Both the position numbers and the translations under genes were made by a program. Under the pieces are notes generated by a model. It was not told the origin of the DNA and made no database searches. It worked only from the letters and a program-made list of their open reading frames with translations. Below are positions 2,769 to 13,543 of a stretch of DNA of 13,633 nt, piece after piece. Source of the stretch: Paramoeba atlantica (Eukaryota > Protista > Discosea); the NCBI GenBank assembly GCA_977017575.1, contig CDRNVI010000223.1, positions 1-13,633 on the forward strand. Direction: 5' to 3'. Each line of letters starts with the position of its first letter. Within the stretch, counting starts at the first letter, position 1.

Positions 2769-3137
2769 TTAAATAACACCAGAATATTCTACTGTAAATG
2801 TTGTTTCTGGCATTCCAGCATGATGCTCTACTGGTAAATTTTCTTCTTTCAAATGCCAAATTGATGGTTGCGGTATAAATCTATCAAGCCACTCACGTTC
2901 TGGTTCTGATAACGGTTTCTCTTGTGTTGTATCGGGCAAATACACCACCGCTTTTGCTTTGTTAACATCCCCATCTTCTTCACCCTTAACTTCAACTTCC
3001 TCAACAGTTAATCCATATTTATTGATTAAAAAATAATCCATTAAAAAATTAGCATAATCTTCTTGATCCTCCCCTTGCTGTAATAACAAAGTACCCAGCA
3101 CAATGATGGGATCAATATCTTTGATATAAACAGCCAA
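2769..3137 (-). CDS. Hypothetical acidic protein, or the C-terminal fragment of the upstream disrupted gene
   Basis: 122-aa ORF with only a TTG start. The frame is open up to 3218 and overlaps the neighbouring ORF. Confidence 0.45.
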   Translation of the reverse strand: MAVYIKDIDPIIVLGTLLLQQGEDQEDYANFLMDYFLINKYGLTVEEVEVKGEEDGDVNKAKAVVYLPDTTQEKPLSEPEREWLDRFIPQPSIWHLKEENLPVEHHAGMPETTFTVEYSGVI

Positions 3138-4000
3138 GTTACTGGTACTATCTTGCCTTTGTTGCCAATTTGTTTTTCTATATTGTTGATAACAACAATC
3201 AATAAATGGTAAGTTTTCTCATCATTAGGTAATTTTTTTGCAGAATCAGCTTTCATTAAACTTGAAAAGCCCAAAAAGCAATCAAATGGATCTTCAGTTA
3301 ATATTTTATGAAGATAATCAACATATTGCTGTGAAAAATAAGGCAATAAGTCAAGTAATAGTGGCATGACAACATCAAATAACCACGGATCATAAAAAGT
3401 GCCTTTTGCAACATGCACTGAAAAGAGTGATTTTAATACCAAATACATTTTATCTGTACTAGTTTCAAGTTTAACCAACGCCATAATATAGTTTTTTATT
3501 GATTCTTTACAATTCCATCTATTATTAGATTCAATTTTTCTTATAACAAAATCACTGACCTTTTCTATCCATCCTTCTTTGTATTGCAACATTTCTTTCG
3601 CTTGTAGATTTTTTTCTATCAATGTTGGAATAACATCCAATAAATTTCCTATAATATTAAAGTTATCATTATTTTCAGCATAATTAAGTGAAAAAATAAT
3701 GTCTATATATTTTTCAAACTCAAATTGATTTCTGCACACTTGAATAAAACCAATATAATAAAATGTAAATCCCCAATTCGGATTTGGAGATAATTGCATG
3801 ATTCTATCAATCCATTCATATTTTTTTTCTTTAAAAATAAAAGCAAAAAATCGTCTTTTTTCCACTATGGTTGCTTCTTGCTGAAAATGTTGAACAAAGT
3901 GGTTAAAACAACCATCTGAAAAATTCTGGTTTATGATCCAAGAAATTCTTTTTTTATATAAATTATTTTTGAATATCCCTTCAATTAATCGGAGAATACT
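3041..4000 (-). pseudogene. AT-rich, probably alpha-helical hypothetical protein, 5'-truncated by the IS3 element
   Basis: The frame of the 3041-3865 ORF stays stop-free up to the IS boundary (SILRLIEGIFKNNLYKKRISWIINQNF...) with no ATG. The first stop is inside the IS at 4061-4063. Confidence 0.7.
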
Positions 4001-4078: not shown

Positions 4079-4366
4079 ATGAAGAAAAGTAAATTGAGCA
4101 CGACCCAAATAGTAACGATGTTGTCGGAAGGAGAAGCGGGATTATCGGCAGGGGATTTATGCCGCAAATATCAGATTTCGTCTGCGACCTATTATAAGTT
4201 AAGAAGTCAATATGCGGGTATGAGTGTGTCTGAGCTAAAACGCTTAAAGGAACTAGAGGCAGAGAATCAGCGATTAAAAGCGATGTATGCTGATATTAGC
4301 TTGGAACATAAGATATTAAAAGAGGTACTTGAAAAAAAGTATCCAGAGCTGCTAGACGAGAATTAG
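4079..4366 (+). CDS. IS3-family transposase OrfA (HTH)
   Basis: MKKSKLSTTQIV...DLCRKYQISSATYYKLRSQYAGMSVSELKRLKELEAENQRLK. AGGAG RBS at 4066-4070. Confidence 0.93.
   Translation: MKKSKLSTTQIVTMLSEGEAGLSAGDLCRKYQISSATYYKLRSQYAGMSVSELKRLKELEAENQRLKAMYADISLEHKILKEVLEKKYPELLDEN
4333..4339 (+). other. Programmed -1 ribosomal frameshift site A-AAA-AAG
   Basis: The heptamer is in the correct phase with orfA (E-K-K). A -1 shift reads VSRAARRELVSAICQRYSLSINRSC straight into orfB, giving a ~372-aa OrfAB. Confidence 0.85.
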
Positions 4367-5196
4367 TCAGTGCAATTTGCCAGAGATATTCATTGAGTAT
4401 TAATCGCAGTTGCCAACTGATGTCTATCAGCAAGACAGGGTATTACTACAAGAGCAAGAAGCATACATCAGATGGAGAAATATTATCTTATTTGCTTAAT
4501 TTAACAGACAAGTATACACGTTGGGGATTTGACAAGATGATGTTGAAAGTTAAACAAGAGCAAAGAGGTTGGAACCATAAACGTGTTTATCGAGTTTACC
4601 GTGAACATGGGTTAAATATTAGGATAAAGCCTCGTAAACGATTAGCCAAAGGAGAAGCAAAGATGTTGTTGCAACCTATTGCCAGGAATATCTGTTGGTC
4701 GATTGATTTTATGTCAGATGCATTAGCATGTGGCACTAAGTTTAGAACGTTTAATGTTATTGATGATTATAACCGTGAATGTTTGCTGATTGAGGCAAGT
4801 TATTCTTTTCCAGCCAAGCGAGTAACGCAATTGCTTGACCAAGTTGCCATAACCCAAGGTTATCCAACAATGATACGTGTTGACCACGGGCCAGAATTTG
4901 AGTCTTATCATTTCAAGGAGTGGGCTAAGCAACATCACATATTGCTTCACTTCATTCAGCCTGGCAAGCCAGCACAAAATGGATTTATTGAGCGTTTTAA
5001 CCGTACGTATCGTGAAGATGTATTGGACATGAACTTGTTTAGAAATTTTAATGAAGTCAGAAAAATTACTCAGCAGTGGATCAACTGCTACAACCAAGAT
5101 AGGCCACATGAATCGTTGGCTGGACTGTCTCCTGTGCAGTTCAGACAATACCGGAAACAAATCACAGGCAATGAGAAATTTTCTACTGTAGACTAG
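4337..5196 (+). CDS. IS3-family transposase OrfB (DDE/rve integrase core), expressed as an OrfAB fusion
   Basis: WSIDFMSD, RVDHGPEF and QNGFIERFNRT carry the D-D-E triad. No internal stops. Confidence 0.93.
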
Positions 5197-5773: not shown

Positions 5774-5866
5774 TATCACTCATCCAATTCTAATTGCTCA
5801 AAGCAGATTACGCCGTCATTTGTGTGTGGCATTTGGCGTGCGTTTATCTGTGACAAGGGGATAAAC

Positions 5867-7057
5867 ATGAAAACATTTCAAGAAATGGGGCTTCCGGAAA
5901 CCCTGATACATACTTTGCAGCATATGCAATTCAATGAACCAACCCCTATTCAGGCTAAGGTCATTCCTCTGGCATTGCAAGGCAAAGATATATTGGGATC
6001 AGCGCAAACTGGAACGGGTAAAACCGGTGCCTTTGGTATCCCACTTGTTGCAAAACTGTTATCCAACCCCCTTGCTTCTGCGCTAGTGATGACACCGACG
6101 CGTGAGCTTGCCACACAGGTGATGAGCCAATTACAAGCCATGCTGGGTAAGAAATCAAAGATCAAATCGGCTTTACTAATTGGTGGTCAATCTATGCCGA
6201 AGCAGTTTGCTCAGCTTCGTAATCATCCACGCGTTATTGTGGGCACACCCGGACGTATTAATGATCACCTCAAGCGTGGCACTTTGAAGCTTCATGATAC
6301 TGATTTTCTGGTACTGGATGAAACAGATCGAATATTGGACATGGGTTTTACCATCCAAATTGAGAATGTAATGAAATATATGGCTGCTAAACGTCAGACA
6401 TTGTTATTTTCAGCTACGTTGCCGAAAAATATTGTGCGAATTGCTGAAAAATATCTAAATAAGGCTGTCCGTGTTGCTGTGAGTGCAACGTCAGCACCCG
6501 CCGCCAATATCAAACAAGATATTCTGCGAATTAGTGAAGCAGATAAATACCCCAACTTGCTCTCTCAGCTCGAGAAGCGAGCAGGCTCGATTATTGTATT
6601 TGTAAAAACAAAATATGGTACCGAAAAAATGGCTGCCAAACTCTCGAAGGATGGCCACAGCGCTGATGCTATTCACGGTAATCTTCGTCAAAACAAGCGT
6701 GATCGAGTGATGGCTGCCTTCCGCAATAAAAAATACCGCATTCTTGTTGCAACTGATGTTGCAGCTCGTGGTTTGGATATTCCTCATATCAAGCACGTCA
6801 TCAATTATGACCTACCTCAATCTGCAGAAGATTATATTCACCGCATTGGTCGTACAGCCAGAGCTGGAGCAGAGGGCTCTGCCCTGAACCTCGTAACACC
6901 TTCCGACAAAATGAAATGGAATACAATTTGTCGGCTGCTTAACCCAGATGCACCAGCAAAAAAATTAAGCAAACCAAAGCGTAATAGCAAAAAATCAAAT
7001 AAGTTCAGAGGCAACCACAAACCTTTTGACCAAAAGCCAAGTCGAAAAGTCGCTTAA
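5867..7057 (+). CDS. DEAD-box ATP-dependent RNA helicase (RhlE-like, DETD variant)
   Basis: Q motif PTPIQ, AQTGTGKT, PTRELA, GG, TPGR, DETD, SAT, ARGLD and HRIGRTAR, with a short basic C-tail. The ATG at 5867 has an AAGGGG RBS, so it is preferred over the GTG at 5822. Confidence 0.94.
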   Translation: MKTFQEMGLPETLIHTLQHMQFNEPTPIQAKVIPLALQGKDILGSAQTGTGKTGAFGIPLVAKLLSNPLASALVMTPTRELATQVMSQLQAMLGKKSKIKSALLIGGQSMPKQFAQLRNHPRVIVGTPGRINDHLKRGTLKLHDTDFLVLDETDRILDMGFTIQIENVMKYMAAKRQTLLFSATLPKNIVRIAEKYLNKAVRVAVSATSAPAANIKQDILRISEADKYPNLLSQLEKRAGSIIVFVKTKYGTEKMAAKLSKDGHSADAIHGNLRQNKRDRVMAAFRNKKYRILVATDVAARGLDIPHIKHVINYDLPQSAEDYIHRIGRTARAGAEGSALNLVTPSDKMKWNTICRLLNPDAPAKKLSKPKRNSKKSNKFRGNHKPFDQKPSRKVA

Positions 7058-7505: not shown

Positions 7506-10500
7506 TTACTTATTTCCCTGTGTCGTTAAGAGAGAGTAAGAATTACTCTTTTTCTTATCCTCTTTATCGTCGTCATCACCGGTATCAGACGGCGATAACT
7601 GCCCAAAAAATGACAAACGTGGCGGTGGCGGCTGCGATGAACCCCGTAGTCGCTGCCGTGACGACTGTCTTTCTTTCTCCAAAACAAGCGGCGACTTTCG
7701 CGACGTGGGCTGCTGTTGCATGAGAGGAATAAGAGTAGCATCCTCCTCCTTACCTTCTTCTTTACCCTTCTTCTTATCGCTGTAATCGAGATCAGACGGT
7801 GATGTGTTCTGCGACGGTGATTGCGACGGCGGTGTGGTTGATGACGCAAGCCCAAAAAAAGGCAAATTCGACGACGGTATTTCCAATTTCTTAGACGATT
7901 GCGACGCCAGCTGTGATGACGATGCATGCGACTCCGGTATAACCAGTGGAGACACCGCCGAGAGAATCGACGACTTCGACGGCAGCTTTTCCGACAACGA
8001 CTCCAAAAACGACGGTTTCTTTCCTCCTGTTAAAGGGTCCTCATCGGTAGCAGTGACCTCTTCTTTCGGCGACTGAAACTGCGACGGTACCGGATTTGAT
8101 ATAACTAATGGAGACGGCGGTGGAGGAGACCGCTTTACTCCTACCGACTTCTTCAAAGACGGCGACGGCAGCTTTTCCGACAACGACTCCAAAAACGACG
8201 GTTTCTTTCCTCCTGTTAAAGGGTCCTCATCGGTAGCGGTGACCTCTTCTTTCGGCGACTGAAATTGCGACGGTACCGGATTTGATATAACTAATGGAGG
8301 TGGCGATGGAGGAGACCGTTTTACTCCTACCGACTTCTTCAAAGACTGGGATGAGAACTGTGACGACAACGACTCCAAAAACGATGGTTTCTTCTCCCCT
8401 GTTAAAGAATCCTGCTCAGTGGCAGTGACCTCTTCTTTCGGTGACTGAAGTGTCGAGCGTAGCGGTGGCAACGGTTGCGGTTTGTTACTAGTATCATCCG
8501 GCAGAGGCGCCTGCGGTTGCGACAATCTCCGTCTCCATTGTCGCGGTTGCGACGATGGTATTTGCGGCCGCGGTGACGGTTCTGGCTGTGGCGTTTGCGG
8601 CCGCGATGACGTTTGCTTTGACAAAGAAGAAGGCTGTTTGTTACTTCCCCCTTTCTTTTTTCGATTTACTACCTTTAGGTTTAGCCTTATCCCTTTCTTT
8701 TGAGCACCCTTATTTTCCCCTTTAGGAGGAGCACTACCTACCTGTTGGGCTTCCCTATTTTCTACTTTAGGAGACGCACCATCTATCTGTTGAGCCTCCC
8801 TATTTCCCCCCTGAACATCAACATTTTCTACTTCAGAAGATGATGCATCACTTACATGTTGAACGTCTTGCACATCACCATCTCTCTCCTGAGAACCGCT
8901 ATCTTCTGATTGAACGCCTTGAACATCATCATCTTCCTCTTTACCGTCACTATCTCCCATAGGTATTGGCAGTCTCAGTTGTTTAGAAAAGTTTTGCTCA
9001 GGATTAGAGCGACGATAACAGCAATACAATATCGTGGCAGAAATTGTAGAAACTAGAAACAACGGTGCCAAAACAAATTGTATCCACCATGTAAATCTAT
9101 CATCAGGCTCAAGATTAGAAAATGGGCTCGGACTTGGCGTTGGCGTTAAACTTGGGCTTGGGCCTGTACTCGGTGATAAATCCGAACTCGGTGCCGGACT
9201 CGGACTTACACTTGGACTGGGCGATGAACTCGAAATCGGTATCGGACTCGGACTTACACTTGGACTGGGCGATGAACTCGAAATCGGTATCGGACTCGGA
9301 CTTATGCTTGGACTGGGTGATAAACTCGAAATCGGTACCGGACTCGGACTTGGCTCTGGACTGGGTGATAAACTCGAACTCGATATCGGACTCGGACTTA
9401 TGCTTGGACTGGGTGATGAACTTGAACTCGGTATCGGACTCGGACTTGGAGATGAACTCGGCGATGAACTCGAACTCGGTACCGGACTCGGACTTGGGAT
9501 TGGATTTGGCGATGAACTCGGAATCGGTGACGGACTTGAGTTCGAACTCGGACTTGGTGGCCACATCGGGCAATTTCTAGTATCCACCGAAAAACATCCC
9601 GTACCATCGTTAAAACCAGGTCTAATTGTTTTTTCACAACTCACTTTTTGGTTAAAAAAACCTGTCTCTGCTAATTTTGCAACTTTGTCTGATTCAGGGC
9701 CTTTGATCACATTAGCTTGAACAACATTCGGATGTTCAGTAAATGCTATATGCGGATACCCGACTGCTTGTCCATAAAAGGTCACTGTCTCTCCTGTGAC
9801 TGCATTGCCATTGAATGTCACGATACCAGATGTACTAAAATTCGTGATCTGTGTTGCATTGAACCCTAATAACACTTCCGACACACTGCTGCCATCTGGC
9901 TTGAGTACGGTTAGAGTTAATCCGTCAATCTGTGTATGACCCACGCCAACATACTCTGCATTTCCTTGTGTGATAACTACTAATATGATGTTATTTCCAT
10001 AGCTACCACATAGGCTAGCACTCCCTCTTGCATGTTGCAGATAAAGCTCCAGCTCAGCATTAGTCAGATTGGCATACGTTATCCCCGCTGATAACCTACA
10101 AATACCATGAATAATTATTACATTACTTAAATCACCGCCGTGAATGCCCGGTAGAGTTGGATACAGTAATTTTGCTTTTCGTAAAATGGGGTTCTTTAAC
10201 GTAGCTCCTAGTAAATCTTGCAATATTTGTAGGGCTATTAAGTAAAATGCTGGCCCACCGTCAGCAACATTTGCAATTAATTGACGCTTATCCATACCAT
10301 CAGTCACCTTCACATCATGGCAGTAATATAAACTACCTCGTGGTACGACTGTTTCACCATCAATTGCCACTGTAAATGTCGAGTTGTTTGCCTGGGCAAG
10401 TTCACCTATATTCACTGCAGAGCCACTCTCTTTACCGTAATCAAAAAAGGCTTGATTGACCTCTGGCGAAATCTCATCAGCCATTTCAACACATATACTT

Positions 10501-11981
10501 GTTTCTGGTCTGCCCGATATAATTGAAAACACCCTGACTGTTTTGTCGTAACACGCCATATGTCGCGTATCTTCACACGGTAGCTCGTCGGATAGTCCTC
10601 TACGTTCCTTCTGACGATTTAACCAACGATTTCCTCCAATCGTAGCAATCCAGTTGCTGGCAAAATCTATTAGCTCCACCTGATTTGAGAGCGCATTCGA
10701 GCTTGACTGATAAGAAGAAAGGGAACTTGATCCACTGTTCGCTATCGCACCTGACCCTGCTAAAGGATCAACATCTTTGCTTCCTGATATACCCCGAGTG
10801 ACTGCAGCCGTAGCACCCATTGCCATCAACGGAACAACCCAACCCTTGCTTACTCCAAATTCAGCAGTATGTTTCCCAGACAGTGCTAATAAAGTCGTTA
10901 CGGCTAAACCTGTTACAGCAGCCTTTGGTAATACAGTTGCAGCTAACATAGTTGCACCAACACCCGCAGCACCTAACGCTGCTGTCGTCGCAACTGATGT
11001 CACTATCTCAGTTGCAGTTTGTTGTTGTTCCGTCTCTTCTTCAATCTCATCCAACGCCCCTTCATCATCGAGATCTCTGTACCACTGCGCAAACGAATTA
11101 GGATTGCGTCTTTTTACCAATTCAGGATGACGATCTGCTGCTTGGTGATAGATAAGCGCAGGGTTCTCAATTAAATACGCTCGAAATCCTAAGTGTTTGC
11201 TTAAACTGTCAAAACATTCTGTTTTTAAACGCTCGATAGCTTGCTCTTCTGTCAAACGTAATGTTGCAAGTATCGGATTTTCACCTATGATGGGGTGATT
11301 TATAATGTCAGGCTTTCTATGTAGTAATGCCCCAAGCTTATATAATGCTGAAAACTTAGGTGGTTCACTCACAAGATAAATAGGGGAAGTATTAGCTAAC
11401 TCGTTAAGCAAACAGCCAACTTCTACAGCGTATAAATCAACGTCTTCTAGATCAATTTCACCTACTTCTTCTGAATCATCATCTAGTTGAAAATTGGCTC
11501 TCTCTCCTAAAAAGTTCGCCACTTTTTGAAAGTTATCTGCTTGCTCTAAAAAGCTGATCAGCTTAATGAAATTAAATACAAACGTAAGACGTGCAGTAAA
11601 ATCATCTCCTGAATCATACAACAAACCTGGAATATGTTTAGCTGTACAGCCAGCATCATGATCCAATGCAGGGTGGTAAATTAAACTAGGATACTTAGCA
11701 AGAGCCGTTTGAAATTGCTTATTATTGAGCGTTAAGTCGTTAAATGATTCTTGGTCGAAATTGTCTTGGACGAAATCTAATAGTTCGACCGCTTCGATAA
11801 ACTTGCGTTTATCCCAGCTAGAAAGCCTCAATTGCTTAACAATATCTCCTATTGTTAATTTACTTTGCTGCTGCGCAGTCACAGATTGAAGTCGTTGTAT
11901 TTTCTGCTGTTCAGGCTGTCTCTGCCCAACGTTGCTACTTTCAACTGATTGTTCACTATGCTCATCAAGATCCTGACTCAT
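7506..11981 (-). CDS. Large eukaryote-like membrane protein (~1491 aa), putative secreted effector
   Basis: Long stop-free ORF. AGGGGG RBS 7 nt before ATG 11981. Hydrophobic cluster at ~10800-11006, TM helix at 9009-9089, Ser/Pro repeats and a low-complexity repeat tail. No signal peptide. Confidence 0.88.
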   Translation of the reverse strand: MSQDLDEHSEQSVESSNVGQRQPEQQKIQRLQSVTAQQQSKLTIGDIVKQLRLSSWDKRKFIEAVELLDFVQDNFDQESFNDLTLNNKQFQTALAKYPSLIYHPALDHDAGCTAKHIPGLLYDSGDDFTARLTFVFNFIKLISFLEQADNFQKVANFLGERANFQLDDDSEEVGEIDLEDVDLYAVEVGCLLNELANTSPIYLVSEPPKFSALYKLGALLHRKPDIINHPIIGENPILATLRLTEEQAIERLKTECFDSLSKHLGFRAYLIENPALIYHQAADRHPELVKRRNPNSFAQWYRDLDDEGALDEIEEETEQQQTATEIVTSVATTAALGAAGVGATMLAATVLPKAAVTGLAVTTLLALSGKHTAEFGVSKGWVVPLMAMGATAAVTRGISGSKDVDPLAGSGAIANSGSSSLSSYQSSSNALSNQVELIDFASNWIATIGGNRWLNRQKERRGLSDELPCEDTRHMACYDKTVRVFSIISGRPETSICVEMADEISPEVNQAFFDYGKESGSAVNIGELAQANNSTFTVAIDGETVVPRGSLYYCHDVKVTDGMDKRQLIANVADGGPAFYLIALQILQDLLGATLKNPILRKAKLLYPTLPGIHGGDLSNVIIIHGICRLSAGITYANLTNAELELYLQHARGSASLCGSYGNNIILVVITQGNAEYVGVGHTQIDGLTLTVLKPDGSSVSEVLLGFNATQITNFSTSGIVTFNGNAVTGETVTFYGQAVGYPHIAFTEHPNVVQANVIKGPESDKVAKLAETGFFNQKVSCEKTIRPGFNDGTGCFSVDTRNCPMWPPSPSSNSSPSPIPSSSPNPIPSPSPVPSSSSSPSSSPSPSPIPSSSSSPSPSISPSPISSSSLSPSPEPSPSPVPISSLSPSPSISPSPIPISSSSPSPSVSPSPIPISSSSPSPSVSPSPAPSSDLSPSTGPSPSLTPTPSPSPFSNLEPDDRFTWWIQFVLAPLFLVSTISATILYCCYRRSNPEQNFSKQLRLPIPMGDSDGKEEDDDVQGVQSEDSGSQERDGDVQDVQHVSDASSSEVENVDVQGGNREAQQIDGASPKVENREAQQVGSAPPKGENKGAQKKGIRLNLKVVNRKKKGGSNKQPSSLSKQTSSRPQTPQPEPSPRPQIPSSQPRQWRRRLSQPQAPLPDDTSNKPQPLPPLRSTLQSPKEEVTATEQDSLTGEKKPSFLESLSSQFSSQSLKKSVGVKRSPPSPPPLVISNPVPSQFQSPKEEVTATDEDPLTGGKKPSFLESLSEKLPSPSLKKSVGVKRSPPPPSPLVISNPVPSQFQSPKEEVTATDEDPLTGGKKPSFLESLSEKLPSKSSILSAVSPLVIPESHASSSQLASQSSKKLEIPSSNLPFFGLASSTTPPSQSPSQNTSPSDLDYSDKKKGKEEGKEEDATLIPLMQQQPTSRKSPLVLEKERQSSRQRLRGSSQPPPPRLSFFGQLSPSDTGDDDDKEDKKKSNSYSLLTTQGNK
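7981..8449. repeat. Coding tandem repeat, 186-bp (62-aa) unit, ~2.5 copies
   Basis: GACAACGACTCCAAAAACGA recurs at 7993, 8179 and 8365. Unit: QSPKEEVTATDEDPLTGGKKPSFLESLSEKLPSPSLKKSVGVKRSPPPPSPLVISNPVPSQF. Confidence 0.97.
8691..8804. repeat. Degenerate coding repeat, 45-bp (15-aa) unit, ~2.5 copies
   Basis: NREAQQIDGASPKVE / NREAQQVGSAPPKGE / NKGAQKKG. The Asn codons are at 8802, 8757 and 8712. Confidence 0.75.
9124..9560. repeat. Coding tandem repeat, 48-bp (16-aa, Ser/Pro-rich) unit built from hexamers, ~8 copies
   Basis: GGACTCGGACTT starts units at 9196, 9244, 9292, 9340, 9388, 9436 and 9484. Encodes SPSPSVSPSPIPISSS-like units. Confidence 0.97.
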
Positions 11982-12165
11982 CACAAAACCCCCTGACATG
12001 TCAATGATTAATGATTATTTACTTTTTAGTTGAAATAGTTATTGAAATAGTTTTAGTCTTTCAGAAAACATAATCGCAAACTGTTACAACTGTTTTCTCG
12101 GTTAAAAGCTTTGAGTATGTGAGTTTATATTGTTTGACTTATGCTTAATTTCTCTTCTCAATACG

Positions 12166-13543
12166 TTATAGTGTAAATAGACATGCTGCCTCGCTGGCAG
12201 TACAAATTTCACCCATGCCTCCAGGCCCCCAAGCTGGTGGACCGACTACTCCAGTTGTATCACCTCGAGTAACAGCCAAAGTGACCATATTATCGTAATA
12301 TTCACACCTTGCTTCTCCCAACGCATCGAATTGAGCATCAATGAAAGAAGCATTATCAAGATCAAATCCAACTGCTGACCCTAACCAACCCTCACCACCG
12401 TACTCACCACCACCAAGGGCTTGCAGCTCACTTGGCAACAAACACCTGACTGTAGACAGTTGTTTGTCAACAACAGCCAACACCGCTGTCATCCGTACTG
12501 CTGGATCCCGTATCCAATTTAATAGACTTTGATGTTGTCCGTGTTCTAAATCATTATACGTCCCAGTACCTGGATTTAATGATACATTCAAACGCCCACC
12601 ATTGCTATAGAAGCGACGGTGCGTCGCTAAACTGTCGACATAATCAGTAATTGCCATCAATTCCAATTGCATACCAGCAGGCGATGGCATTAACCAACCG
12701 ATACTACCCCTATACTGACGCTGTGTATGCTGTAACTGCGTACCAAACGTGGCTTTTAATCGTGGTAACAATCGTTGTTCTAATCTCACATGACCACCAA
12801 CACCATCGACATCATCATCATGTGCATCATACTTCGAATTAAAACGCACAATGTCGTAATCCATACCACCGGATAATCGACTGTGTGACCATAAGTGCAA
12901 TGCAACGTTAACATGCACATTACCACTGTTGGCACCCGCTATACGGCGTTGTTCGGTATAAACATTATCAGCTATTTTATCAGAGAGGTTTTTGCTACCC
13001 GAGTAGCTATAGTAACCACCAAAGCCAACTGACTCGATATATGCATTATCGATTAAGTAGGCATAATCACCTCCCACGGCATTTTGATATACCCATCTTG
13101 ATACCGTGCCAGAATCAAAACTAAAATCTAAATTTTCACCTAAAAAACTCATACGTTAATTTAATGCGATGTTTATCCGTTAACCCTAAACCATAAGTAG
13201 TATTCACTCGAATCACATTTGGACCACCGGCAATTTCCAACGCCAGTGCATTTCGTTGAGCTGCATCTAAATAGCTCGCAGCTTTGAGGTCGGTAATAAA
13301 ACCCAACTCCGTATCACCATAAGCACCCATGCTAAATACTTCTGAGTTAACTCTGCCATTACTGGTAGTTGTACTGGATTGCTTAGGACGTATTCTTGAA
13401 GCAGTTGCCCGTCGTTTGGGTAATTTACCCGGGTTTGCTGCGATAATAGTTTGAGTTGAGACTGACCCTATCATTGTAACAATGATTGCGACTAACAGGC
13501 TAAAAGCAAACTGATTACATTTGCTAGTGTGTTTGCTCATCAT
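12166..13543 (-). pseudogene. Inverse autotransporter (intimin/invasin-like, type Ve) beta-barrel protein split by a 1-nt frameshift
   Basis: N-terminal signal-peptide-like segment (MMSKHTSK...FAFSLLVAIIVTMIG). Beta-strand-like segments GPNVIRVNTTYG, RIKLTYEF, WVYQNAVGGDYAY, RRIAGA and LLNWIRDPAVRM resemble Legionellales inverse-autotransporter beta domains as I recall them. Removing one T from the T6 run (13142-13147) joins both ORFs into ~458 aa. Confidence 0.72.

Follow-up and report, generated by a model that had tools for sequence, protein, structure and literature searches.

The minus strand of the window (the whole 13,633-nt stretch of DNA analysed) carries one large, intact gene at 7506-11981 whose product has no recognisable family. 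Tentatively, and with less than even confidence, we read this product as a lineage-specific ORFan accessory membrane protein of the bacterium's own inner membrane, with its N- and C-termini in the cytoplasm (N-in/C-in). On sequence alone, we slightly favour such a resident protein over a translocated effector in a host membrane, the possible but rather doubtful role proposed in the initial annotation.

An intact orphan gene in a variable interval

The reading frame is free of stops over 1497 codons (7506..11999, minus strand) and ends with the stop codon at 7506-7508. Because an AGGGGG Shine-Dalgarno sequence sits 7 nt before the ATG at 11981, this ATG is likely the true start, which gives a protein of 1491 aa and agrees with the end coordinate initially assigned to the gene; an in-frame ATG at 11999 would lengthen the protein by 6 aa. 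The residue numbers used here (aa 1-1497) start at the ATG at 11999, and not at that at 11981. The gene is carried by the 2.45-Mb MAG chromosome OZ220716.1 of an uncultured gammaproteobacterium, whose genome has a GC content of ~42%. That the frame might be spurious, or an artefact of assembly, is suggested by nothing except the lack of homologues, and we consider this effectively refuted, since 1497 sense codons at this GC content are far past chance, the start combines an ATG with a Shine-Dalgarno sequence, the gene has the GC1 > GC2 > GC3 periodicity of its neighbours, and the same sequence is present both on an independent 12.5-kb contig and on the finished chromosome.

Searches of Pfam, NCBIfam, PADLOC and PHROGs with the whole protein and its pieces (E up to 10) returned no family, and a PDB sequence search with aa 1-815, the tail and one repeat unit gave no match. 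With aa 1-815 as the query, a word-indexed search of 5.8 billion proteins found just one truncated copy of the same gene. The tail alone as a query, tblastn against plasmids and pattern scans of metagenome and viral contig collections yielded no homologue, and literature searches on the accession numbers returned nothing. The protein is an ORFan without a paralogue, because the full HMMER scan of 1.84 billion representatives returned two fragments of the same gene only. The initial annotation had likewise recognised no family; it had proposed looking for paralogues, of which the same 1.84 billion representatives contained none, and had put forward a match to a housekeeping family as evidence against its effector, which was not found in Pfam, NCBIfam, PADLOC, PHROGs or the PDB sequences.

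The gene lies in a rearranged, variable interval together with an IS3 element and other orphans. Mevalonate genes adjoin the region, and among plasmid-borne sequences, those most closely related to the IS3 element come from Piscirickettsia. A promoter and terminator scan of the region gave nothing beyond shuffles, Rfam and tRNA scans gave no result, and a search for IS-end inverted repeats was uninformative. Upstream of the start there is a tandem 11-mer (Table 1) that is unique within the 24.5-kb locus, the part of the chromosome covered by the analysis, and of which none is expected in shuffles; it is a candidate regulator-binding site or slippage product. Further upstream, after a gap of 167 bp, lies an orphan gene which in the public record is a single 458-aa ORF that begins with a signal peptide, is beta-rich in the middle and has four Cys in its C-terminal part, and which reads as two ORFs in the window due to one frameshift. 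No family, structure or relative was found for its product, including by a metagenome search, and a functional tie between the two genes is conjecture.

As to the lineage of the source bacterium, the nearest named relatives in a search with PpiD include Legionellales. In a neighbour-joining tree, PpiD forms a tight pair with that of one MAG (54% identity), whose contig stops at ppiD, so that the interval matching the one between ppiD and bio is not present on it; a further relative of the clade has a PpiD with 41% identity. The placement with Legionellales is without bootstrap support in this tree, and the link of the chromosome to this order is weak.

Segments and repeats of the protein

Segments were defined by hydropathy (19-residue Kyte-Doolittle window) together with a composition run, and their coordinates are collected in Table 1.

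Table 1. Features of the large gene and its upstream region, in window coordinates (aa numbered from the ATG at 11999).
Feature	Coordinates	Strand	Basis
Whole CDS, 1491 aa	7506..11981	-	ORF and Shine-Dalgarno; public record identical
Acidic N-domain, probably helical, aa 7-330	11010..11981	-	Composition; net charge -26
Weak Ala/Gly/Thr/Val-rich hydrophobic cluster, three lobes, aa 332-404	10788..11006	-	Hydropathy
Ser/Gly-rich linker, aa 405-445	10665..10787	-	Composition
9-Cys domain, 367 aa, aa 446-812	9564..10664	-	Composition/hydropathy
Ser/Pro stalk, 148 aa, aa 813-960	9120..9563	-	Composition; 48- and 144-bp tandem repeats
Strong TM helix, aa 971-995	9015..9089	-	Hydropathy; flanks
Cys-free Ser/Pro/Lys/Gln-rich tail, 502 aa, aa 996-1497	7509..9014	-	Composition
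45-bp (15-aa) repeats, acidic part of tail	8700..8805	-	Tandem-repeat search
62-aa (186-bp) repeat, 2.5 copies	7965..8444	-	TRF 7977-8449, 90% matches; alignment
Tandem 11-mer, exact, 12-bp period	12030..12052	-	31-53 nt upstream of ATG 11999
Upstream orphan gene, same strand	12166..13543	-	ORF; public record

The first 330 residues carry a net charge of -26 and three Cys, in line with the acidic, helical domain of ~330 aa initially described. Within this domain, a Pro-x-Leu/Ile-Ile-Tyr/Asn-His motif occurs three times (aa 104, 230 and 280), and segment 40-130 resembles segment 255-330 (z = 5.3). Single-sequence AlphaFold2 predicted an all-helical structure with a mean pLDDT of 41.6, which is unusable as a model. 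The N-terminus is polar and the protein therefore has no Sec-type signal, as had been noted before.

The hydrophobic cluster reaches Kyte-Doolittle maxima of just 1.4-1.6, and crude biological-scale sums gave +2.2 for the first lobe and +6.5 to +6.8 for the second and third, which leaves only aa 337-357 as a marginally TM-competent lobe. Hence, the cluster of hydrophobic segments reported initially is present, with three lobes, but the three membrane passes assigned to it are not established because only this one lobe is competent on the crude sum. The number of N-terminal passes keeps an odd parity with either one lobe or three.

The domain that follows the linker probably folds and contains exactly nine Cys (475, 483, 503, 560, 634, 664, 788, 802 and 810). 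Its composition is mixed, its final third looks beta-rich, and single-sequence AlphaFold2 again gave an unusable model (mean pLDDT 32.1). Among the 160 residues counted at aa 801-960, which include the stalk, 70 are Ser and 50 are Pro, and TRF detected 7.4 copies of a period of 48 at 9168-9536 (87% matches). The sole strong hydrophobic peak in the protein is at aa 975-993 (Kyte-Doolittle 2.02), and matches an ordinary inner-membrane anchor in hydrophobicity. Directly after it comes YCCYRR (aa 992-997, window 9009-9026), with Cys-Cys followed by Arg-Arg, and the net charges of the flanks are -2 on the N-side and +3 on the C-side. In summary, the Ser-rich linker, the domain with nine Cys (initially put at ~345 aa), the Ser/Pro stalk of ~150 aa and the single TM helix ending in YCCYRR were all recovered.

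The tail has no Cys, and 68% of its residues are disorder-promoting. It contains an acidic zone of 15-aa repeats, a basic patch (8652-8699), the 62-aa repeats and a hydrophilic C-terminus. The opening 27 residues of the 62-aa repeat are almost invariant between copies, and the later copies are 82% and 59% identical to copy 1. The initial description of ~500 Cys-free, disorder-type residues holds, but not that of a tail full of linear motifs: an SH3-type enrichment in PxxP was rejected, as the nine occurrences are no more than composition gives (7.8 +/- 2.5 in shuffles). A WH2-type reading of the 62-aa repeats was rejected as well, as no WH2 match was found (E up to 10) by Pfam with the tail and each repeat unit or by PDB phmmer with the tail and one repeat unit. 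A C-terminal sorting signal (PEP-CTERM, GlyGly-CTERM or LPXTG) was also rejected, given the 502 aa that follow the TM helix and the absence of any NCBIfam family for the whole protein and the stalk-TM pieces (E up to 10).

Codon usage and the origin of the gene

G-ending codons make up 47% of the Lys, Glu and Gln codons in the gene, compared to 23% in housekeeping genes (p = 6e-11), and this choice resembles that of the neighbouring IS3 element. The proportion increases along the gene: it is 36-44% across the N-terminal half and reaches 54% in the tail. The tail also has a higher GC3 (0.44) than the N-domain and Cys domain (0.31-0.32), and the Ser and Pro codons of the stalk and tail shift to TCG and CCG. 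Since the N-domain and Cys domain have the GC3 of housekeeping genes (0.29-0.34), at least this half of the gene is a long-term resident. The increase in G-ending codons, the higher GC3 of the tail and the shift to TCG and CCG could together be accounted for by a mosaic, in which the stalk, TM helix and tail come from a foreign, possibly eukaryotic or viral, gene for a type I membrane protein fused to a resident N-terminal half. However, we consider such a fusion unlikely, as nothing resembling a donor of the tail was found, codon counts can be skewed by repeat expansion alone, and the reading frame is unbroken with no other junction signature. A mosaic origin would fit a resident protein as well as a host-directed one.

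Placement in the bacterial or a host membrane

From the segments, composition, charge flanks, repeats and orphan status described above, we infer a topology, a compartment and a possible binding function. As a resident protein, it would keep its acidic N-domain in the cytoplasm, and the weak hydrophobic cluster, crossing the membrane once or possibly three times, would act as an internal signal-anchor. The next ~570-615 residues, comprising the Ser linker, the 9-Cys domain and the Ser/Pro spacer, would pass into the periplasm until the helix at aa 971-995, followed by Arg-Arg, acts as a stop-transfer and keeps the 502-aa disordered, repeat-bearing tail in the cytoplasm. The protein may serve as a two-anchor envelope receptor or scaffold, with a periplasmic binding domain carried by a flexible spacer and a pair of cytoplasmic arms that would recruit partners via short repeated motifs.

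By hydropathy and the crude insertion scale, two segments and no more are TM-competent, and the strong helix is flanked by positive charge on its tail side; the protein is therefore predicted to be N-in/C-in by the positive-inside rule, which is established knowledge. The presence of nine Cys in the 367-aa loop domain and none in the tail is expected at a compartment boundary. Cytoplasmic domains several hundred residues long that precede an internal signal-anchor are an ordinary bacterial design, as are inner-membrane anchors adjoined by Pro/Ser-rich spacers, with examples in GspL, ToxR, TonB, FtsN and RodZ. In TonB, FtsN and RodZ, the membrane anchor is followed by a long low-complexity spacer bearing a folded domain; the large protein has the same three elements but no homology to them, its domain has a membrane anchor on either side, and its spacer is purely Ser/Pro and encoded by tandem repeats. 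It likewise shares the order of TM1, periplasmic domain, TM2 and cytoplasmic part with two-TM receptors such as chemoreceptors and sensor kinases, the plain bacterial counterpart of a receptor-like layout, but has in addition a 330-aa cytoplasmic N-domain, and its tail is disordered with no signalling module (HAMP, HisKA, HATPase and MCP-signal domains are absent according to Pfam and NCBIfam). Two published observations also point to the inner membrane: TM segments in the hydrophobicity class of the strong helix are SRP-targeted to it (PMC12981334), and proteins with a large periplasmic loop are not exported efficiently by type IV systems (PMC11602083).

Other observations count against a resident protein. 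A conserved envelope function should have relatives, and none was found among the 1.84 billion representatives; the interval around the gene is rearranged and also contains an IS3 element and other orphans, and the Lys, Glu and Gln codons of the gene are unlike those of housekeeping genes and like those of the IS element. The 150-aa Ser/Pro stalk, the Cys-Cys at the cytosolic boundary and the 500-aa Ser/Pro-rich repeat tail would be more usual in a eukaryotic type I membrane protein or an effector. The number of Cys in the loop is odd (nine), and the residues flanking the first hydrophobic segment on its N-side are very acidic, unlike a usual inside flank.

The translocated effector of the initial annotation would be delivered by a type IVB or type III system, its cluster and strong helix would insert in the vacuolar or plasma membrane, and its tail would meet host cytosolic partners. 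In the earlier version, the Cys domain and the stalk are lumenal, while a weaker version leaves every soluble part cytosolic. We regard this as possible but doubtful. The gene is an orphan without paralogues and combines atypical codons, like those of the adjoining IS3 element, with a variable, orphan-containing neighbourhood, all of which would suit an effector. So would the Cys-Cys at the cytosolic TM boundary, within a half of 685 aa that is otherwise Cys-free, as a juxtamembrane Cys-Cys is a classic position for S-palmitoylation in eukaryotic membranes. The genomic setting fits as well, with mevalonate genes adjacent, relatives of the IS3 element in Piscirickettsia and Legionellales among the nearest named PpiD relatives, although the latter link is without bootstrap support.

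Low-hydrophobicity, Ala/Gly-rich segments like those of the cluster are found in exported TM effectors (PMC12981334; PMC6110835), and most T4BSS TM effectors share the predicted N-in/C-in topology and likewise have a long C-terminal tail (PMC12981334). Dot/Icm TM effectors such as SidF also share with the large protein the small number of TM segments, one of them of low hydrophobicity, and a hydrophilic C-terminus (PMC12981334). Three of the six C-terminal features of the S4TE type (PMC3814349) are present, and favour an effector: five basic residues in the last 25 aa (at least three needed), a hydrophilic C-terminus and a hydrophilic protein as a whole (global hydropathy -693). The other three count against one, as the C-terminal charge is -2 and not positive, there is no hydrophobic residue at -3/-4, and the strict E-block (EExxE in the last 30 aa) is absent; in its C-terminal charge and the lack of the E-block the protein differs from Dot/Icm TM effectors. 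It also has no eukaryote-like Pfam domain, and its PxxP count is not above composition.

The main difficulty for an effector is the loop of ~615 aa between the TM-competent segments, which greatly exceeds what is known from TM effectors. Those of type IV systems have one or two TM segments, with ~80% of loops below 30 aa (PMC12981334; PMC11602083), and adding 8.6 kDa to the periplasmic loop of SidF decreased translocation by 80% (PMC11602083). In addition, the strong TM helix would be expected to go to the bacterial inner membrane. We know of no precedent for such a loop crossing a host membrane post-translationally, as the lumenal version would require.

Similarity to chlamydial Inc proteins is limited to a compact cluster of close, small-residue hydrophobic segments behind a soluble N-terminal part. 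Here, only one of the cluster's three lobes is TM-competent, and the second, strong TM helix is far off. Membership of the Inc family was rejected, as there is no bilobed domain, the source is a gammaproteobacterial MAG and not a chlamydia, and Pfam gave no IncA match. The protein also resembles eukaryotic type I glycoproteins with a mucin-like stalk in its Cys-bearing ectodomain, Ser/Pro stalk, single strong TM helix, juxtamembrane Cys and basic residues and disordered tail. However, it has a 330-aa domain and a hydrophobic cluster in place of a cleavable signal peptide, and its gene lies on a bacterial chromosome, starts with a Shine-Dalgarno sequence and has no eukaryotic homologue that we could find.

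The layout also parallels that of Tir of attaching-effacing E. coli, a double-pass protein with a cytosolic N-terminal part, an exposed binding domain between the passes and a disordered cytosolic C-terminal part (PMC10864410). By analogy, a hairpin in the host membrane would display the Cys domain, and the upstream signal-peptide protein, encoded on the same strand, beta-rich in the middle and with Cys in its C-terminal part, would be its partner on the bacterial surface, tethering the bacterium. We consider such a receptor-ligand pair very improbable. The loop is about six times that of Tir (~615 aa compared to ~100), the Ser/Pro stalk is present in the large protein only, and neither protein matches Tir, intimin or an inverse autotransporter. 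The Tir N, M and C domains gave no match (no Pfam family for the whole protein, and none among PDB sequences), and none of the genes beside the large gene is recognisable as an intimin-type or chaperone gene. Moreover, the window copy of the upstream gene carries one frameshift, 167 bp separate the two genes, and there are no relatives with which co-occurrence could be assessed. In a more general form, which is still quite unlikely, the protein would be a host-membrane receptor with a Cys-stabilised domain facing the bacterium on a mucin-like stalk and a palmitoylated, motif-bearing tail, maybe paired with the adjacent secreted protein. This would amount to an independent invention of a Tir-like strategy in an uncultured gammaproteobacterial lineage, and would need a hitherto undescribed route for a 600-residue loop across the host membrane.

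If it is delivered to a host, the protein would represent only the second class of receptor encoded by a pathogen or symbiont, after Tir; it would break the short-loop rule for exported TM effectors, and would bear directly on the handling of membrane proteins by secretion systems and by the insertion machinery of the host. If it is resident in the inner membrane, as we favour, it would be a curiosity, namely a new lineage-restricted family in which eukaryote-looking low-complexity modules have arisen inside a bacterium. In either case, a large, intact and well-structured gene has been missed by every homology-based annotation method.

Reality, relatives and composition of the large gene

The minus-strand frame of the large gene runs without interruption over window 7506-11999 (1497 codons). 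An AGGGGG lies 7 nt before the second in-frame ATG (11981), so translation probably begins there, as the initial annotation had placed it, giving a protein of 1491 aa. The frame shows the GC1 > GC2 > GC3 periodicity of the neighbouring genes, its sequence is present on a finished 2,447,832-bp chromosome as well as on an independent 12.5-kb contig, and the window copy is intact and identical to that in the public record OZ220716.1. In summary, this is a real, intact, architecture-rich ORFan. Between 31 and 53 nt upstream of its first ATG, an exact 11-mer recurs in tandem with a 12-bp period, the single such site in L001, the 24.5-kb locus around the gene in OZ220716.1 (0 expected in shuffles); the repeat could be bound by a response-regulator-type activator or could have arisen by slippage.

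Neither the whole protein nor its pieces matched Pfam, NCBIfam, PADLOC or PHROGs, even at E = 10, and a search of PDB sequences gave no match, in agreement with the earlier remark that no family could be recognised. With aa 1-815 as query, a word-indexed search of 5.8 billion clusters found nothing but a copy of this gene cut off by the end of a contig. An HMMER scan that went exhaustively through 1.84 billion representatives, with no length limit, gave only this truncated copy and one other fragment of the gene, so there is no detectable paralogue in the same genome. The tail as its own query found no relative within the 276-878 aa range, and scans of plasmids, metagenome contigs and viral contigs were blank. 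Membership of the Tir, Inc, WH2, sorting-signal and sensor-receptor groups was also tried, and every profile failed. Judged by sequence, the protein belongs to no family among those tested.

The gene is compositionally atypical, its C-terminal third most of all. GC3 is 0.31-0.32 in the N-domain and the Cys domain (housekeeping genes, 0.29-0.34) and 0.44 in the tail. G-ending codons make up 47% of Lys/Glu/Gln codons in the whole gene and 54% in the tail, against a level of 23% across the twelve housekeeping genes compared (Fisher p = 6e-11 for the gene, 8e-11 for the tail); at 46-48%, the ORFs of the nearby IS3 element are as atypical as the large gene.

Anatomy of the protein

Segments defined by hydropathy and composition analysis (see the table) reproduce the domain list of the initial annotation almost point for point.

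Features of the large protein (residues counted from the ATG at 11999) and of its surroundings
Feature	Position	Properties
Acidic N-domain	aa 1-330	net charge -26
Ala/Gly/Thr/Val-rich cluster	aa 332-404	three lobes; 19-residue Kyte-Doolittle (KD) maxima only 1.4-1.6
Ser/Gly-rich linker	aa 405-445	
Cys domain	aa 446-812	ordinary 'folded' composition; exactly nine Cys
Stalk	aa 813-960	near-pure Ser/Pro array; 48/144-bp tandem repeats in DNA
Sole strongly hydrophobic helix	aa 971-995	KD 2.02; ends Tyr-Cys-Cys-Tyr-Arg-Arg
Tail	aa 996-1497	no Cys; 68% disorder-promoting residues; hydrophilic end
Basic patch of tail	aa 1101-1116; window 8652-8699 (-)	two Lys/Arg clusters 10 residues apart
Tandem 11-mer	window 12030-12052 (-)	
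Upstream orphan	window 12166-13543 (-); L001 8458-9834	signal peptide; beta-rich middle, alternating hydrophobic pattern; C-terminal ~130 aa with 4 Cys
DEAD-box helicase	window 5822-7057 (+)	411 aa from GTG at 5822
IS3-family element	window 4079-5196 (+)	two ORFs: HTH_Tnp_1, then rve
Two overlapping orphan ORFs	window 2769-3865 (-)	274 aa at 27.9% GC; 110-122 aa; adjoin IS3 element

The N-domain is all helical in an AlphaFold model of low confidence (mean pLDDT 41.6, no alignment), carries the short motif Pro-x-Leu/Ile-Ile-Tyr/Asn-His three times, and contains two segments, 40-130 and 255-330, that resemble each other (z = 5.3). The AlphaFold2 model of the Cys domain has a mean pLDDT of 32.1 (no alignment).

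The polar N-terminus argues that the protein has no Sec-type signal, as proposed earlier. Of the three N-terminal passes suggested there, the three-lobed cluster is found, but only lobe 1 (aa 337-357) nears the strong helix, at ~+2.2 versus +1.1 (lobes 2 and 3, +6.5 to +6.8), in crude sums over a biological insertion scale that take neither position nor length into account. A single N-terminal pass and three are equally likely and, as the parity does not change, the outcome stays N-in/C-in. The flanks of the strong helix are net negative on the N-side and net positive on the C-side.

The tail includes an acidic zone of 15-aa repeats, the basic patch, whose spacing resembles that of a bipartite nuclear-localisation-type or polybasic membrane-binding motif, and 2.5 copies of a 62-aa repeat with the first 27 residues nearly invariant. 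By pattern count, the hydrophobic motif Phe-Leu/Phe-Glu/Gly-x-Leu occurs four times, once in each repeat copy (three, at the repeat heads in 7965-8444 (-)) and once near the C-terminus (7596-7616); a similar Phe-Phe-Gly-Leu at 7848-7865 is one spacing off the pattern. The function of the tail may centre on this motif. The description of the tail as full of linear motifs did not hold, with PxxP found 9 times versus 7.8 +/- 2.5 in shuffles.

Neighbourhood and source

OZ220716.1 is recorded as 'MAG: Gammaproteobacteria bacterium'. Upstream of the large gene, on the high-coordinate side, lie a biotin operon, xseB, a cupin gene and the 458-aa orphan with a signal peptide, for which family, PDB and metagenome searches found no relative. 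Downstream, towards window 1, are the DEAD-box helicase, a cold-shock gene, the IS3 element, two orphans of 28-36% GC, ppiD, ribE and mevalonate-pathway genes. Two differences separate the window from the public record: a single substituted base in the helicase gene (within 6300-6399, the ORF still being intact) and, inside the upstream orphan, a 1-base length difference, which breaks this gene once, by one frameshift, into two ORFs, where the public copy is a single 458-aa ORF. The public helicase call begins 45 nt after the GTG (396 aa).

In the more remote relative with a 41% identical PpiD, ppiD comes after tig-clpP-clpX-lon-hupB, as is usual; here, the tig-to-hupB side is swapped for the block of IS element, orphans, helicase and large gene, so the interval has been rearranged. 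The contig of the closest relative (PpiD 54% identical) stops at ppiD. At L001 19710-24494, the genes that come after ppiD are an HTH gene and those of the mevalonate pathway (GHMP kinase, diphosphomevalonate decarboxylase), an order kept in the 54% relative, which has HMG-CoA reductase. The orphan pair beside the IS3 element has a GC content far below its surroundings, and its only family match is a weak one, to a PHROG of unknown function (E = 0.005). A search of the element gave no clear terminal inverted repeats, and the plasmid-borne transposases closest to its own are those of Piscirickettsia salmonis (60% identity).

The best named PpiD matches are a Legionellales MAG (37%) and two Legionella species and Ca. 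Berkiella (33-34%), with Sedimenticola scoring on par. A neighbour-joining (NJ) tree of PpiD supports only the pairing with other MAGs (bootstrap 100% and 57%) and gives no supported link to Legionellales. A Legionellales-like, host-associated lifestyle is therefore no more than possible.

Inner membrane or host membrane

The succession of cytoplasmic part, pass, large exposed domain, pass and cytoplasmic part fits a eukaryotic receptor and a bacterial inner-membrane protein equally. The reading that we rank first, tentatively, is an N-in/C-in bacterial inner-membrane protein with a periplasmic loop. The weak Ala/Gly cluster would act as an internal signal-anchor, the loop would be exported by Sec, and transfer would be halted by the strong helix with its Arg-Arg, with Cys limited to the exported portion; this route makes special machinery unnecessary. 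Residence in the inner membrane leaves unexplained the orphan status, accessory context, codon bias, mucin-like stalk and position of the Cys-Cys pair, right at the cytosolic boundary in a 685-residue half otherwise devoid of Cys. These features keep alive the somewhat less likely reading of a translocated effector in a host membrane.

Published work on exported membrane effectors also favours the inner-membrane reading. The TM segments of most T4SS TM effectors, like those of T3SS substrates, are moderately hydrophobic and evade SRP targeting, and T4SS TM effectors have 1-2 such segments (PMC6110835; PMC12981334). The effectors are mostly N-in/C-in, with ~80% of loops < 30 aa (PMC12981334); strongly hydrophobic ones go through an inner-membrane intermediate, from which they have to be extracted towards the cytoplasm. 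[quoted passage not shown] Against these data, a loop of ~615 aa with a folded Cys domain in it would suit type IV export poorly; the loop of Tir is ~100 aa (PMC10864410). Three of the six S4TE-type C-terminal criteria (PMC3814349) apply, a count that does not discriminate. The specific form proposed in the initial annotation, with the Cys domain and stalk lumenal and the tail cytosolic, is mechanistically strained, and that exact topology takes about a third of the weight we give to an effector. We know of no precedent for an injected protein moving a loop of this size across a host membrane. That the upstream signal-peptide gene encodes a ligand for a Tir-like large protein is a conjecture at the level of layout only, and very improbable.

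In function, the closest likeness of the protein may be either a two-TM receptor or scaffold with a periplasmic loop or Tir; these two differ in compartment.
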